A DNA stretch of 64,000 nt from Octopus sinensis (Eukaryota): contig NC_042999.1 of NCBI RefSeq assembly GCF_006345805.1, positions 92,132,001-92,196,000 on the forward strand. Reading direction: 5' to 3'. Below the pieces are notes generated by a model. The model made no database searches and was not told where the DNA came from. It saw only the letters and a program-made list of their open reading frames with translations. The position numbers were made by a program, and so were the translations under genes. Shown piece after piece: positions 15,701 through 23,628 of this stretch; position 1 is the stretch's first letter, and each line of letters starts with the position of its first letter.

Positions 15701-16233
15701 AACAATATATGCTTCCATCTCTCTCTCTCTCTCTCTCTCTCTCTCTCTCTCTCTCTCTCTCTCTCTCTCTTATTTTCTTATTGCATACAATGCATACTTC
15801 TATATATACAGACATTTATTTATGTATGTGTATATATATATATACATATATATATATATATATATATATATAATATATATATATATATATATATATATAT
15901 ATATATATATATGGAGATGTACCTGCATAGCAAGTGATTTGATCTGAGATCGTGTGCTGAAACGAAAACAATTGCAGCGTGGAAGGTGTTTGTAAGCCAT
16001 TTAAGAAACACACAAAAGCCGTTCGATTCACTTCAACATTTAAGTTTAATTTGTCAAAATATTTTCGTCGCTAAAATCCGCGACCTGTTCACTGACAAAA
16101 ATCCGTGCTGCATCTGAGAAAGTAACAGTTAGTTCGTTATATATATGTACGTATCTATGTGTGTGTGTATGTATGTATGCACGCATGTATGTATGCATGC
16201 ATGTATGTATGTACGTACGTACGCCTATGTGTA

Positions 16234-17525
16234 CGAGGGGCGTTCAATAAGTAATGCCCCTGACCCACTTCCCATAGCAGTAGAGCAACGAAACTTGGCA
16301 CAGTTATTAGTCTTTTTCTACATAGGAACCACCCAGAGTTACGCATTTCTCCCATTGTTTGATGCAGCTCTGGAGACCGTTTTTGTAGAAGACCCCAGCT
16401 TGGTCCTCCAACCTGAACGTGACTTCAGAAATCAAGGCTGCATCATCTGGGAAACGCTTTCCTTTCAAAAACAACTTCATGACTGGGAAGAGGGGAAAAT
16501 CAGAGGGTGCAAGGTCAGGAAAGTAGGAGGATGGGGGATGAGTTCATAGCCATACGGCTGTGCTTCTGATCTGGCGACAAGCGAGTTGTGGACCGGAGCG
16601 TTGTCCTGCAGGAGGAGGATGCCTTTGCTGATCTTGCCCCGCCTCTTGATTTTGATAACTTCTCTTAATTTCCTCAAAAGTGAAGCATAATAGGCTCCTG
16701 TAATTGTGGTACCCTTTGCCAGGAAATCTGTCATCACTACTCCGTCCTGGTCCCAGAAGACAGTGAGCATCACCTTGCCAGCGGAGGGCTGCACCCTTGC
16801 CTTCTTTGGAGGGGGTGAGTCACGGTGCTTCCACTGCATTGACTGGGCTTTGGTCTCTGGATCATCGTGATGGACCCAGGTTTTATCCTGTGTAATCAGT
16901 CTTTTGAAAAATTTTGACTTATCTTCTTGGCACATCTCCAAATTCATCCTCGAGCACTCGACGCGTTCTTGCTTCTGGAAAGGCGTGAGCAACCTGGGAA
17001 TCCATCTGGCACACACCTTTTGCATATGCAAATGATCATGAATGATAGTTTCCACAGACCCGGTACTAATCTTGACCTCATGGGCTATTTGGCGAATAAT
17101 TATGCGTCGATCTTCCAAAATAGCAGCCTCAACTTGACGGACAGATGCATCATCAATGGCAGAAGCGGGGCGACCAGATCTGGGAGCTGTTTCCACAGAG
17201 TTCCGACCATGTTTGAATTCCCGATACCAGCGTTTTACAAGGTCATATGATGGGGCATCATCACCATAAGTTACTTTCATTTCATCAAAAGTCTCCCGTG
17301 GTGTGCGTCCTTTCAAATACAAAAACCGGATCACTGCTCGACACTCAACAGGCTCCATTTCACACTTGACTCAGTTCAAACACCTGTAAATCAGACACCA
17401 CAATTAGTTCAGAGCTGTAATTTGTCACGTACTCTATAGAGATATAAATAATTGCACATGCAAAATTTCAGCTAGATCAAACAACTCCAAGTGGGTCAGG
17501 GGCATTACTTATTGACCGTCCCTCG
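16234..17525 (-). mobile_element. Full-length mariner (DD34D) transposon, irritans/Bytmar-like
   Basis: 37-bp TIRs CGAGGG(G/A)CG(T/G)TCAATAAGTAATGCCCCTGACCCACTT with 2 mismatches, TA duplication on both sides and a transposase ORF inside. The subfamily call is inference from TIR and N-terminus resemblance. Confidence 0.97.
16307..17358 (-). pseudogene. Mariner transposase, about 350 aa, with one 1-bp frameshift
   Basis: HTH N-terminus (RAVIRFLYLKG..PRSGRP), WIPRLL, TQDKTW, LQDNAPVH. After HPP the frame shifts; the shifted frame reads YFPDLAPSDF...WEKCVTLGGSYVEKD* with the stop at 16307-16309. Confidence 0.93.
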
Positions 17526-18769
17526 TATGTATGTATGTATGTATGTATGTATGTATGTATGTATGTATGTATGTATGTATGTATGTGTGTATATGCACGC
17601 ACACACACACTATAAACTTAAAGCTATAAACCTGTAGTGATGGATAGATGTAGACTGACCACTCATCACAACAATATCAAATTTCAACCTCCCCCGCCGG
17701 AACTAGGAAGTGATTTACGACTCTCACCCCCACGACAAAACTCTAAGACCTATTATCAGTAACTTATCTCTATATCACAAAACTTTTGTTTTACTATTAC
17801 TTATCTCTTTTTTTCCTCCCTTACATCTAGTTAGTTCAGGTTATATATACGTATGTATGTGTGTATGTATGTATGTATGTATGTGTGTATGCACGTACGT
17901 ACGCATGTGCGCATGTATGTATATGCGCACGTATGCATGTGCGTATGTATGTGTGTTTGTACATGTACGTGCGTATGTACGTGTGTACGCCCATACGCAG
18001 GTATGTATGTTTGTATTTATATGCTACGTATGTATGTGAGTATCTAGGAGAACGGGCAGACGCGTCTGTGTGTGTGTACATGTGAACGTATGTCCGTGTA
18101 CTGGTATGTGTCCGTCTAAGTTGTGTACATGACTGTTACTTTGTTGAAGGTTCTATATATATACACCCATATATGTTTGCATAGACGCACACACATATAA
18201 ATATATATGTGTGGGTGTGTGTTTGTTCCTCTCATCATCGTCTAACGGTGAATGGATACAACGTTTAGGTGCAACTGTGCACATATAACCATATACACAA
18301 GTACACACAATCATATAGACACACTCATAAATACACTTATAACCTTAAATTATATACTCATATATGCTTATCCACTTCAACATACATATGTCCTAGTACA
18401 CACATACACACACACACGCACACACTCGCATAAACATACATATGCACACACACACGCACACACTCGCATAAACATACATATGCACACACACACACATACA
18501 TATAAAATAAGACACAGTATTCAAGGGCAACGGTTAAAAATCGAACATGCATTATATTAACATATCTGCTTTTTTTTTATTATATATATATGCATAAACG
18601 TATACATATACAATGCATACATACACCCATACATACTCATATGTGCATGCATGTGCATTAAATTCCTTTTTTTATAGCACCACACACGCACATACGTAAC
18701 AACGTACGCTCATACGGTTATATATAACTGCACACGCATTGCAACATGTATGTAAGGATTACATGTAAA

Positions 18770-21070: not shown

Positions 21071-21157
21071 TTTCTTCCTGAAGAGAAAGACACAATATGG
21101 TCTCATTATTCAATCGGAATTTGGTAAATTGTGCCTTTCGAAACGTGTAGAATGAAA
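21071..21157 (+). ncRNA. Type I hammerhead ribozyme motif (PLE-type), shortened stem III
   Basis: CTGAAGA at 21078-21084, stem II 21085-21096/21128-21139, GAAAC at 21140-21144, and GT-GTA cleavage triplet ending at 21149. Confidence 0.75.
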
Positions 21158-21304
21158 CGATTTCTGTTCAATCTTCGTTCAACTCCATTTCTTCAATTCA
21201 CTAATAATATATATATATATATATATATATATATATATATATATATATATGTGTGTGTGTGTGTGTGTGTGGTGTGTGTGTGTGTGTGTGTGTGTGTGTG
21301 TGTG

Positions 21305-23628
21305 TGTGTGTGTGCGTCTATGCAAACATATATGGGTGTATATATACAACCTTCAACAAAGTAACAGTCATGTACACAACTTAGACGGACACATACCAGT
21401 ACACGGACATACGTTCACATGCACATACACATGTACACACACACAGACGCGTCTGCCCGTTCTCCTAGATACTCACATACATACGTATATATAACCTGAA
21501 CTAACTAGATGTAAGGGAGGAAAAAAAGAGATAAGTAATAGTAAAACAAAAGTTTTGTGATATAGAGATAAGTTACTGATAATAGGTCTTAGAGTTTTGT
21601 CGTGGGGGTGAGGGTCGTAAATCACTTCCTAGTTCCGGCGGGGGGAGGTTGAAATTTGATATTGTTGTGATGAGTGGTCAGTCTACATCTATCCATCACT
21701 ACAGGTTTATAGCTTTAAGTTTATAGTGTGTGTGTGCGTGCATATACACACATACATACATACATACATACATACATACATACATACATACATACATACA
21801 TACGTACATACATACATACATACATACATACATACATACATACATACATACATACACACAGGCGTACGTACATACATACATGCATGCATACATACATGTC
21901 ATGCATACATACATGCATGCATACATACATACACACACACATACATACGTACATATATATATAACGAACTAACTGTTACTTTCTCAGATACAGCACGGAT
22001 TTTTGTCAGTGAACAGGTCGCGGTCTTAAAGCGACGAAAATATTTTGACAAATTAAACTTAAAGGATCTTTTCCTTTTGATGGACGGAATTTCTAGTTAA
22101 CTAAACAATTTGAAACTTCGTATACTGGTAGAATGTGTCAAAAGAAAACATTATTTTCACTTGGCTTTTTTGAGAAAATTGTAACTTGTAAGTTTAACGT
22201 AGTTTAATTCTTCGAATTCTAACCACTGAAATGCCAGCATTTGAGCTCAAATCATTTGCTGCGTCTAAAAACTCAGACAACATCCTGTTGCAACGTAAAC
22301 AGCACACACACACACACACACACACACACACACCACACACACACACACACACACACACACTCACACACACACACACGTGTTATTCATCTTTCTCTCTTCT
22401 TTCTGTCTCGCTCATCGATATTGATAAACAAAGGAGGAGGTATGTGCTAGAAATAACAGCCATATCTCTTAAATCGATGAATTTCGTCGCCCAATAAAAA
22501 TGTTAACGATATTTTTTGAATATTTTCTTTATTATTTCTTACCGAAAAGGCTTCTCCCATGGTTTTGAAGGGCCCAAAACAACAAAAACAAAACAATAAT
22601 ATGCCTAAATCGGTCTAGAGGGTGCGCGTGGAGTGTGGGTCGTATTGTAAGAAATTGCGAAATATTTTTTCATAAAAGGATGCCCCAGCTTGTCGGAGGC
22701 TGTGATATAAATTGGGAAAAAAAATCCTCGACACCAGTGCGTAATTGGTACTTAATTTATTGACCCCGAAACGATGAAACATTGACCCCCAACTTCTGGT
22801 TTATTTACCTTTTGTGTAAATTTGCTGCGGCAAGGGGCAAAACACAGAAAGGACAAAGCATGAGATACATAAGTATTAAGTCGATTCTATCGACACCAGT
22901 GCGAACTCACGAACGTGTATGTATGCTTGTGTGCGTATGTGTGTGTATGTATATCTCCGTTTGTATGTGTGTGCACGCTTATATATTAATTACTATGTTC
23001 TTGTGCAAATGTATATGCATGTGTTTGAGAGAGAGAGAGAGAGAGAGAGAGTGGTAGTGAGTGTGTGTGTGTGTGTTGTGTGTGTGTGCAAGTGTACGTG
23101 TGTATGTATCTGAATATATGTATGTGTATGTGTGTGTGTGTATGCGGCGTGCGTCTCCCCGTTTGTTAATATTTTTATTGGGCGACGAAATTCATCGATT
23201 TAAGAGATATGGCTGTTATTTCTAGCACATGCCTCCTCCTTTGTTTATCAATATCGATGAGCGAGGCAGACAGAAGAGAGAAGGATGAATAACACGTGTG
23301 TGTGTGTGTGCTGTTTACGTTGCAACAGGATGTTGTCTGAGTTTTTAGACGCAGCAAATGATTTGAGCTCAAATGCTGGCATTTCATTGGTTAAAATTCG
23401 AAGAATTAAACTACGTTAAACTTACAAATTACAATTTTCTCAAAAAAGCCAAGTGAAAATAATGTTTTCTTTTGACACATTCTACCAGTATACGAAGTTT
23501 CAAATTGTTTAGTTAACTAGAAATTCCGTCCATCAAAAGGAAAAGATCCAACTTAAATGTTGAAGTGAATCGAACAACTTTTGTGTGTTTCTTAAATGGC
23601 TTACAAACACCTTCCACGCTGCAATTGT
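21305..23628 (-). repeat. Right arm of large inverted duplication (interrupted by long-TIR element)
   Basis: Reverse complement of the left arm. It lacks the mariner and carries the 22064-23549 insertion instead. Confidence 0.95.
22064..23549. mobile_element. Non-autonomous DNA transposon with ~400-bp TIRs and 8-bp TSD (Merlin-like)
   Basis: GGATCTTTTCCTTTTGATGGACGGAA...TTCCGTCCATCAAAAGGAAAAGATCC. TIRs at 22064-22507 and 23165-23549. TSD AACTTAAA at 22056-22063 and 23550-23557, confirmed by the single-copy site in the left arm (16039-16046). 5'-GG termini with an 8-bp TSD fit Merlin. Confidence 0.85.

Follow-up and report, generated by a model that had tools for sequence, protein, structure and literature searches.

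The 64,000-nucleotide stretch of Octopus sinensis DNA analyzed here (the window; NCBI RefSeq assembly GCF_006345805.1, contig NC_042999.1, positions 92,132,001 to 92,196,000 of the forward strand) holds at 15913-23628 what is very probably one inserted unit of Penelope-like retrotransposon (PLE) sequence, placed in a (TA)n microsatellite and composed of two 5′-truncated copies in head-to-head arrangement, each with its 3′ end pointing outward. The family encodes an apparent reverse transcriptase (RT) with a GIY-YIG endonuclease at its C-terminus. The longer copy occupies the minus strand from 20634 to 15968 and continues in a 55-bp tail to 15913, and the shorter copy runs on the plus strand from approximately 20627 to 23628. 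The original prediction had described this locus as about 0.8 kb of partly unique host sequence duplicated in inverted orientation around a 3.1-kb spacer. Here, we show the anatomy of the unit, the multi-copy nature of its arms, and the repeated occurrence of its layout in the genome. Judged by sequence comparison, the inverted arms correspond to the approximately 0.9 kb of 3′-terminal PLE sequence (3′ UTR) common to both copies, since the arm sequence is multi-copy and is continuous with the PLE in other copies; the "spacer" is the body of the decayed, 5′-truncated minus-strand copy.

The locus is an ordinary one, because the head-to-head layout of PLEs has already been described and the three other transposons present were inserted later. 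It matters little beyond annotation, as a textbook case of a complex inverted PLE insertion that shows how such a structure can pass for an inverted duplication of host DNA. Of modest value are the internal empty-site control, which gives exact target-site duplications for a nested mariner and a nested element with long terminal inverted repeats (TIRs), and the many dimers of the family, whose orientation, one-sided tail and junction microhomology can be used for studying how PLE inverted repeats form.

Organization of the unit

Direct reading places the left remnant of the insertion target, a (TA)n microsatellite, at 15821-15912. It is followed by the tail beyond the canonical PLE 3′ end (15913-15967, minus strand), which is found only at this end of the unit and whose 55 bp also adjoin family termini elsewhere. 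The 3′-terminal segment of the main copy, forming the outer left arm, lies at 15968-16233 on the minus strand (positions 6357-6597 of a full-length sibling copy). Beyond the nested mariner, the remainder of the approximately 1-kb 3′ UTR (17526-18788, minus strand) is collinear with the copies L009, L008, L018, C1, C13, C16 and C9188; within it lie a subfamily-specific 420-bp segment at 18279-18697 and microsatellites with the motifs (TATG)n and (CA)n(TA)n(TG)n. The decayed coding region, located by tblastn against the sibling ORF, occupies 18789-20634 on the minus strand and is 5′-truncated at approximately 20634.

The two copies meet at 20627-20634, a short stretch that, compared with the sibling copy and the left arm, is readable as either copy and constitutes the microhomology of the junction. 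The inverted copy begins with an expanded (CA)n(TA)n half of the PLE internal microsatellite (20627-20676, plus strand), matching 18188-18222 of the left arm, and continues, past a nested palindromic repeat, in the inner right arm (21208-22063, plus strand; sibling positions 5729-6522). Past the long-TIR element, its 3′ terminus lies at 23550-23628 (plus strand), identified by the inverted arm match and lacking the tail. A short (TA)n at 23629-23641, also read directly, is the right remnant of the target. Partial tandem copies, which would form a direct pLTR, are absent at this locus; a tandem repeat of a piece of the PLE 3′ UTR is found at another (L004).

Copy number and continuity of the inverted arms

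The arms begin at 15968 on the left and 23628 on the right, and align in four inverted blocks: 15968-16046 with 23628-23550 (97.5% identity), 16039-16211 with 22063-21887 (94%), 17525-17869 with 21811-21466 (98.6%), and 18017-18195 with 21494-21307 (91%, with microsatellite indels). Across 594 aligned bases outside microsatellites, the alignment that the original prediction had proposed shows 9 mismatches and 6 gap events. Divergence is spread unevenly: the terminal 172 bp account for 7 of the mismatches and the 422 bp further in for 2, a distribution that a single clean event does not predict. The arms are real and all of the coordinates in the original prediction were right, but the label "unique" was wrong.

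For the terminal 173 bp (15968-16140), 1373 candidates yielded no fewer than 42 scored genomic matches, with 97-99% identity; for the inner segment 17590-17850, 412 candidates yielded no fewer than 41, with 89-95%. The drop in candidates over 0.4 kb reflects frequent 5′ truncation of copies that share a common 3′ end, and truncations were found at sibling positions 3201, 3712, 5376, 5729, 6195 and 6412. In other genomic copies (C1, C13, C16, C9188, and L009, which corresponds to 17524-19378), terminus, arm and coding region form one uninterrupted sequence. Over 17590-17850 the left and right arms are 99% identical, and any other genomic copy among the matches listed reaches at most 95%; the two arms therefore appear to be each other's closest relatives among those matches.

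These observations bear on the proposal that a recent fold-back event duplicated about 0.8 kb of host sequence, leaving a PLE and a hammerhead repeat in the spacer. High-identity inverted arms do exist, and a palindromic microsatellite lies at the inner arm end, as that proposal would have it. Host DNA duplicated in this way would have single-copy arms, but both non-microsatellite parts of the arms have dozens of scored matches and belong to the PLE's own 3′ UTR; a multi-copy, dispersed arm is the very outcome that the original prediction had set against itself. Fold-back would also mirror the sequence adjacent to the junction, yet on the side of the main copy approximately 2 kb, at sibling positions 3712-5700, lack an inverted counterpart. 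Duplication of host DNA is refuted by copy number and by other copies in which the arm passes straight into PLE coding sequence, and it retains hardly any probability. The original guess of PLE-linked inverted copying pointed in the right direction. A PLE does lie between the arms, as had been noted, but as a continuation of the left arm rather than as separate cargo.

Misassembly, in which repeat copies were wrongly joined into a chimera or a palindrome, is likewise highly improbable. Tandem and inverted PLE structures are known to trouble assemblies (PMC8557442), and among short-read unitigs and low-coverage Illumina data nothing spans any junction of the structure. Against a misjoin, the PLE arms are unequal in length (approximately 3.3 kb versus 0.9 kb), they differ in nested insertions, in microsatellite lengths and by 9 substitutions, unlike a technical palindrome, and the same layout recurs at eight other loci.

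PLE coding region and ribozyme searches

The coding region in the window corresponds to amino acids 418-1029 of a 1029-aa sibling ORF, with 87-92% amino acid identity by tblastn (91.5% over amino acids 818-1029), and is interrupted by two frameshifts and three in-frame stops. The last 130 aa of the sibling ORF (L049) match the Pfam GIY-YIG domain PF01541 with 25.5 bits, where the cutoff is 22.6 (E = 1.6e-5). Pfam RVT_1 falls below its cutoff on the same ORF (E = 0.06), and NCBIfam RT models match around its YVDD motif (Drt2, 2.3e-5; Drt3a, 7e-4; retron RT, 6e-3). RT motifs are discernible in the translation, and the nearest Atlas clusters of the ORF combine RVT_1 and GIY-YIG at 0.95-0.97. Sequence searches of Pfam and the PDB with the whole 1029-aa ORF returned nothing, matches being obtained only with cut-out domains. 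A Cys-rich linker, CX3CxxC, lies just upstream of GIY-YIG, and Cys and His residues occur inside the GIY-YIG core.

Rfam detected no hammerhead in window positions 14000-26000 (E ≤ 0.1), nor in the full-length sibling L049 or the head-to-head dimers L050 and L051 (E ≤ 0.01), and a scan for the hammerhead core motif within the window PLE found none. Matches to miRNA families in Rfam (mir-297, mir-466, MIR847 and others) were rejected as far below gathering scores and of microsatellite or palindrome origin. Canonical PLEs usually carry a hammerhead ribozyme. The ribozyme is not universal, being absent from Naiad and Chlamys (PMC8557442).

Nested transposons

A mariner of 1292 bp with 37-bp TIRs lies at 16234-17525 on the minus strand of the left arm, between TA dinucleotides at 16232-16233 and 17526-17527. 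Direct reading confirmed that the corresponding site in the right arm holds a single TA (21853-21854). Among 2892 candidates, no fewer than 40 full-length members of its family were scored, with 96-98% identity. The transposase ORF (17358 to 16477, 293 aa) matches Pfam Transposase_1 (1.3e-24) and HTH_48 (1.3e-10). The TA duplication, short TIRs and transposase assign the element to Tc1/mariner, with a catalytic triad of doubtful completeness: in this copy, as in all six family copies compared, the ORF terminates short of the region where the third catalytic Asp would lie, and the copy is therefore probably non-autonomous.

The right arm carries a non-autonomous DNA element of 1486 bp (22064-23549) whose 254-bp TIRs are 99% alike. 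An exact duplication of 8 bp, AACTTAAA, flanks it (22056-22063 and 23550-23557), and the empty site is found once in the left arm, at 16039-16046, as the complement TTTAAGTT; the element's length and its single site had both been given correctly. The 8-bp reading is preferred because the TIRs are then perfect from the first base. A piggyBac-style duplication (TTAA inside AACTTAAA) was rejected, since it would leave the ends asymmetric. Measured against hAT elements, the 8-bp duplication is present, the TIR begins with GGATC, unlike the ends typical of hAT elements, and the element contains no transposase; no ORF in 22064-23549 matched any family. Scored matches to the TIR family number at least 40 (90-99% identity), out of 2008 candidates; other copies measure 0.4-1.3 kb. 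Loose unitig ends at 22063 are uninterrupted PLE ends from other copies.

Each uninterrupted arm proves the target-site duplication in the other, as originally proposed, and supports the insertion of the mariner and of the long-TIR element alike after the arms had formed. The accompanying claim that both families were recently active holds only in a relative sense: the mariner shares 96-98% identity with the copies closest to it, and its ORF stops early.

The third insertion is a repeat of approximately 530 bp, here called pal (20677-21207), that contains a 385-bp palindrome (20826-21210). The palindrome had been called an inverted hammerhead repeat, but belongs to a separate multi-copy family with at least 40 scored copies (86-95% identity, some 99-100%) from 1746 candidates, and a search of 20600-21330 with Rfam matched no hammerhead family at E ≤ 10. 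A core-like motif is present, in which CTGAAGA is followed by a 5-bp stem enclosing 45 nt of loop and then by GAAAC. It was rejected as a hammerhead core: the motif is conserved, but the remainder of this young family is conserved too, its sibling copies being too similar to reveal covariation; covariation is absent, and helices I and III are unconvincing. All seven pal copies inspected are flanked by (TA)n, and as a weaker side reading pal may be a non-autonomous passenger of the PLE machinery.

Head-to-head copies across the family

The 3′-outward dimer recurs at eight other loci, six among the listed terminus matches together with the full-length copies L050 (C1) and C9188, and none of these eight other dimers, among the matches listed, has the opposite, 3′-inward orientation. 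The joins involve 0-3 nt, being direct in L050 (4064|4065) and a 3-nt overlap in L015. The 55-bp tail is present at 11 of 23 family termini, adjoining the terminus ACAATTGCAGCG, and occurs nowhere else; it is absent at 23628, and exactly one end was tailed in all four dimers checked. Almost all of the 23 termini at other loci are flanked by (TA)n. Craig et al. (2021; PMC8557442) describe PLEs with an inverted 5′-truncated copy adjoining the 5′ end, tails often at one end only, and (TA)n targets in several PLE clades. Tails in the literature are 30-40 bp long.

The structure could also have come about if members of this PLE family had inserted twice, independently and in opposite orientations, into one (TA)n microsatellite, a preferred target. 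The family's targeting of (TA)n, the excess of arm mismatches in the terminal 172 bp and the restriction of the tail to one end would fit such a history. It would not, however, account for the consistent 3′-outward orientation of the eight other pairs, for copies that abut directly at microhomology with target DNA absent between them, or for inner arm blocks 99.5% alike when the best other copy listed reaches at most 95%. We consider independent insertions improbable and infer that one retrotransposition event made both PLE copies.

As a plausible route for such a single event, the (TA)n target, being self-complementary, would be nicked on both strands, and each strand would prime reverse transcription on the 3′ end of PLE RNA; the two resulting cDNAs would then be joined at short microhomology. 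Three unrelated elements, the mariner (at a TA), the palindromic repeat (into the internal (TA)n) and the long-TIR element (with its 8-bp duplication), inserted later; microsatellites also expanded or contracted and the PLE ORF decayed. The 3′ ends that always face outward in the dimers of the family, the (TA)n on both flanks, the direct microhomology joins and the single tailed end suggest a tentative and still rather doubtful generalization, namely that PLE inverted repeats arise by priming on both strands at self-complementary (TA)n, the tail marking the nick that is resolved second. Were a genome to carry hundreds of them, the dimers could serve for a statistical test of this unsolved step in PLE integration.

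Comparison with known systems

The family resembles the canonical endonuclease-positive PLEs (see Evgen'ev and Arkhipova 2005; PMC8557442, fig. 2) in encoding an apparent RT and then a C-terminal GIY-YIG in one ORF. Further likenesses (PMC8557442) are frequent 5′ truncation, an inverted 5′-truncated copy at the 5′ end that produces flanking inverted repeats, a one-sided tail, (TA)n insertion, and the CX3CxxC linker upstream of GIY-YIG. It differs from them in lacking an Rfam-detected hammerhead, in its tail of 55 bp rather than 30-40 bp, and in an approximately 1-kb 3′ UTR full of microsatellites. Hydra-clade PLEs have a CxCX5C linker and no CCHH (PMC8557442), whereas the window family has the CX3CxxC linker, Cys and His within the GIY-YIG core, and a long ORF of 1029 aa, which may set it apart as another family.

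The nested mariner is a typical Tc1-mariner in its TA duplication, TIRs of approximately 37 bp, length of 1.3 kb, and HTH_48 and Transposase_1 domains, and departs from that group in its 293-aa ORF, which does not reach the region of the third catalytic Asp. In the twin priming of L1 that Ostertag and Kazazian reportedly described in 2001, a second priming on the other target strand yields an inverted segment with a microhomology join. The window unit likewise contains an inverted segment joined at microhomology. The inverted piece of L1, however, derives from further upstream in the same RNA and is unduplicated, whereas both copies in the PLE unit hold the same 3′ end, giving terminal inverted repeats.

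The inverted arms are copies of a dispersed repeat

Self-comparison of positions 15000-25000, together with direct reading of both strands, defined two inverted arms. The left arm occupies 15968-16233 and 17526 to about 18195, and is interrupted by a mariner (16234-17525, 1292 bp); on the minus strand, the right arm occupies 23628 to 23550 and 22063 to about 21307, and is interrupted by a long-TIR element (22064-23549, 1486 bp; 254-bp TIRs, 99% identical). These coordinates agree with the original prediction, and its reasoning that the arms are reciprocal empty sites is sound: the TA found on both sides of the mariner is single at 21853-21854 in the right arm, and the exact 8-bp AACTTAAA flanking the long-TIR element occurs once in the left arm, at 16039-16046. 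Over 594 aligned non-microsatellite bases, 9 mismatches and 6 gap events separate the arms, a divergence of 1.5% in unique sequence, and the remaining difference between them is microsatellite length.

The arms had been interpreted as duplicated host DNA, with the proviso that a multi-copy dispersed arm would refute this. Searched against the source genome (2.72 Gb, 13516 contigs), the terminal piece (15968-16140) gave at least 42 scored matches at 97-99% (1373 first-look candidates) and the inner piece (17590-17850) at least 41 matches at 89-95% (412 candidates). At those loci the two pieces have the order, orientation and intervening microsatellite of the window, and several copies run far into the supposed spacer: collinearity extends over 17524-19378 in locus L009 and over 18698-20637 in four long copies. 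The arm is thus a dispersed multi-copy element, which refutes the host-duplication idea on its own terms.

The repeat has the architecture of a Penelope-like element

A decayed ORF on the minus strand of the supposed spacer encodes a YVDD motif, a Cys-rich stretch and then a GIY-YIG-like start. Used as a genome query, a 268-aa piece of it revealed a large family, with 3756 candidates; open frames of 700-1042 aa occur in some members. The ORF of the full-length sibling copy L049 is 1029 aa from the first listed start codon, within a stop-to-stop frame of 1042 aa. Its C-terminal GIY-YIG domain passes the Pfam cutoff (25.5 versus 22.6 bits), its middle matches reverse transcriptase (RT) models weakly (RVT_1, E 0.06; NCBIfam Drt2, 2.3e-5), and the nearest ESM Atlas clusters combine RVT_1 with GIY-YIG. 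Endonuclease-containing Penelope-like elements (PLEs) are built in this way, with the GIY-YIG C-terminal to the RT, and on this architecture the repeat is predicted to be one of them. The window copy corresponds to amino acids 418-1029 of the L049 ORF and carries two frameshifts and three stops; it is 5'-truncated and dead.

Among many copies the last 173 bp of the PLE (15968-16140) are 97-99% identical, and the adjoining 3' UTR (17590-18478) of the same copies is only 84-95% identical, for example in L014. Either conservation is far stronger at the 3' end, or this end is common to several subfamilies, as expected of an RT recognition site. A 420-bp low-complexity segment of the 3' UTR (18279-18697), present in loci L009, L008 and L004 and absent from four long copies compared, looks like a subfamily-specific indel.

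Two PLE copies and three nested insertions form the unit

When the window was mapped onto L049 (ORF 2464-5550, 3' end 6593), the main PLE copy, which is on the minus strand, extended from 20634 (sibling 3712) to 15968 (sibling 6593), and the right arm proved to be another, plus-strand copy (sibling ~5729 to 6595). Comparison of the inner ends showed that this inverted copy extends across the PLE's internal (CA)n(TA)n(TG)n microsatellite to about 20627. It adjoins the main copy there at the latter's truncated 5' end, a few bases being readable as either. Since the PLE copies and the three nested insertions account for all of 15913-23628, there is no spacer.

The third insertion (20677-21207) is a repeat of about 530 bp from a separate family, with a 385-bp near-perfect palindrome and at least 40 scored copies (1746 candidates), some partial copies being 99-100% identical. 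It has (TA)n on both sides in 7 of 7 inspected copies, the same target as the PLE, and its position places its insertion in the (TA)n tract of the PLE's internal microsatellite. It contains a hammerhead-like core (CTGAAGA, a 5-bp stem and GAAAC) that gave no match to Rfam hammerhead models. Dozens of Rfam "miRNA" matches (mir-297, mir-466, MIR847) at 15821-15912, 17528-17590, 17849-18024, 21208-21306 and elsewhere were sub-threshold, and were rejected as artefacts of simple sequence in the microsatellites and the palindrome. The right flank (23735-23950) holds a SINE-like multi-copy repeat with matches in L013, L018, L019 and the C13 locus, and the long-TIR element contains fragments of this repeat (22728-22907).

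The nearest relatives of the mariner are 96-98% identical to it. In each of the six family copies inspected, the mariner's 293-aa ORF stops short of the region of the third catalytic Asp; five of these are sibling copies that have the same flanks and so appear to be duplicates of one locus. Five of the best mariner matches, L053-L057 (C8909, C9753, C11925, C8298 and C10:36096462), appear to be one locus on several unplaced contigs and C10, either as haplotigs or through segmental duplication, because their flanks are identical on both sides. Given these identities, the shortened ORF and the divergence between the arms, the "recent" transposon activity originally proposed holds in a relative sense only.

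Alignment of 23 family termini revealed two end classes: in one, (TA)n directly adjoins ACAATTGCAGCG, and in the other, a conserved 55-bp extension, or tail, lies between (TA)n and the same terminus. The extension occurs only adjoining the PLE terminus. The window unit is flanked by (TA)n at both ends and has the extension at the left end (15913-15967) and none at the right.

Formation of the inverted dimer

Six inverted pairs, 0.2-2.8 kb apart and one of them partial, were present among the terminal-piece matches, all with the plus copy on the left and hence with 3' ends outward. Two long copies from the RT search, L050 (C1) and one on C9188, each bear an inverted 5'-truncated copy at the 5' end; the opposite, 3'-inward orientation was seen in none of these eight. 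Copies are joined directly in L050 (4064|4065) and with a 3-nt overlap in L015, and the tail is at exactly one end in all four dimers with both ends readable. Among the matches listed, neither window arm has a closer relative than the other arm (99%, versus at most 95% for any other copy). The mutual closeness of the arms, the invariably outward orientation and the direct microhomology joins lead us to favour formation of both PLE copies in one integration event. In such an event, the nuclease would nick both strands of self-complementary (TA)n, reverse transcription would start at the 3' end of the RNA with each 3'-OH as primer, and the two cDNAs would then meet and be ligated at microhomology. 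This single-event model gives no account of the uneven arm divergence: 7 of 172 terminal bp mismatch (15966-16137 against 21964-22063 and 23558-23630), versus 2 of 422 further in, and it is the right arm that deviates, the left terminal block being 99% like other copies.

Comparison with described Penelope-like elements

The linker upstream of GIY-YIG contains CX3CxxC, and Cys/His residues lie inside the GIY-YIG core; compared by motif, these are listed as Neptune/Nematis-type rather than Hydra features (PMC8557442). The locus departs from the PLEs described by Craig et al. 2021 (PMC8557442) on two counts. No Rfam hammerhead match was obtained in 14000-26000 or in L049, L050 and L051, and the tail is 55 bp rather than 30-40 bp. 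On every other count it agrees: PLE insertions are highly 5'-truncated, an inverted 5'-truncated copy may adjoin the 5' end, the tail is often at one end only, and (TA)n is a preferred target of several PLE clades in which a Cys-rich linker precedes GIY-YIG (Craig et al. 2021, PMC8557442).
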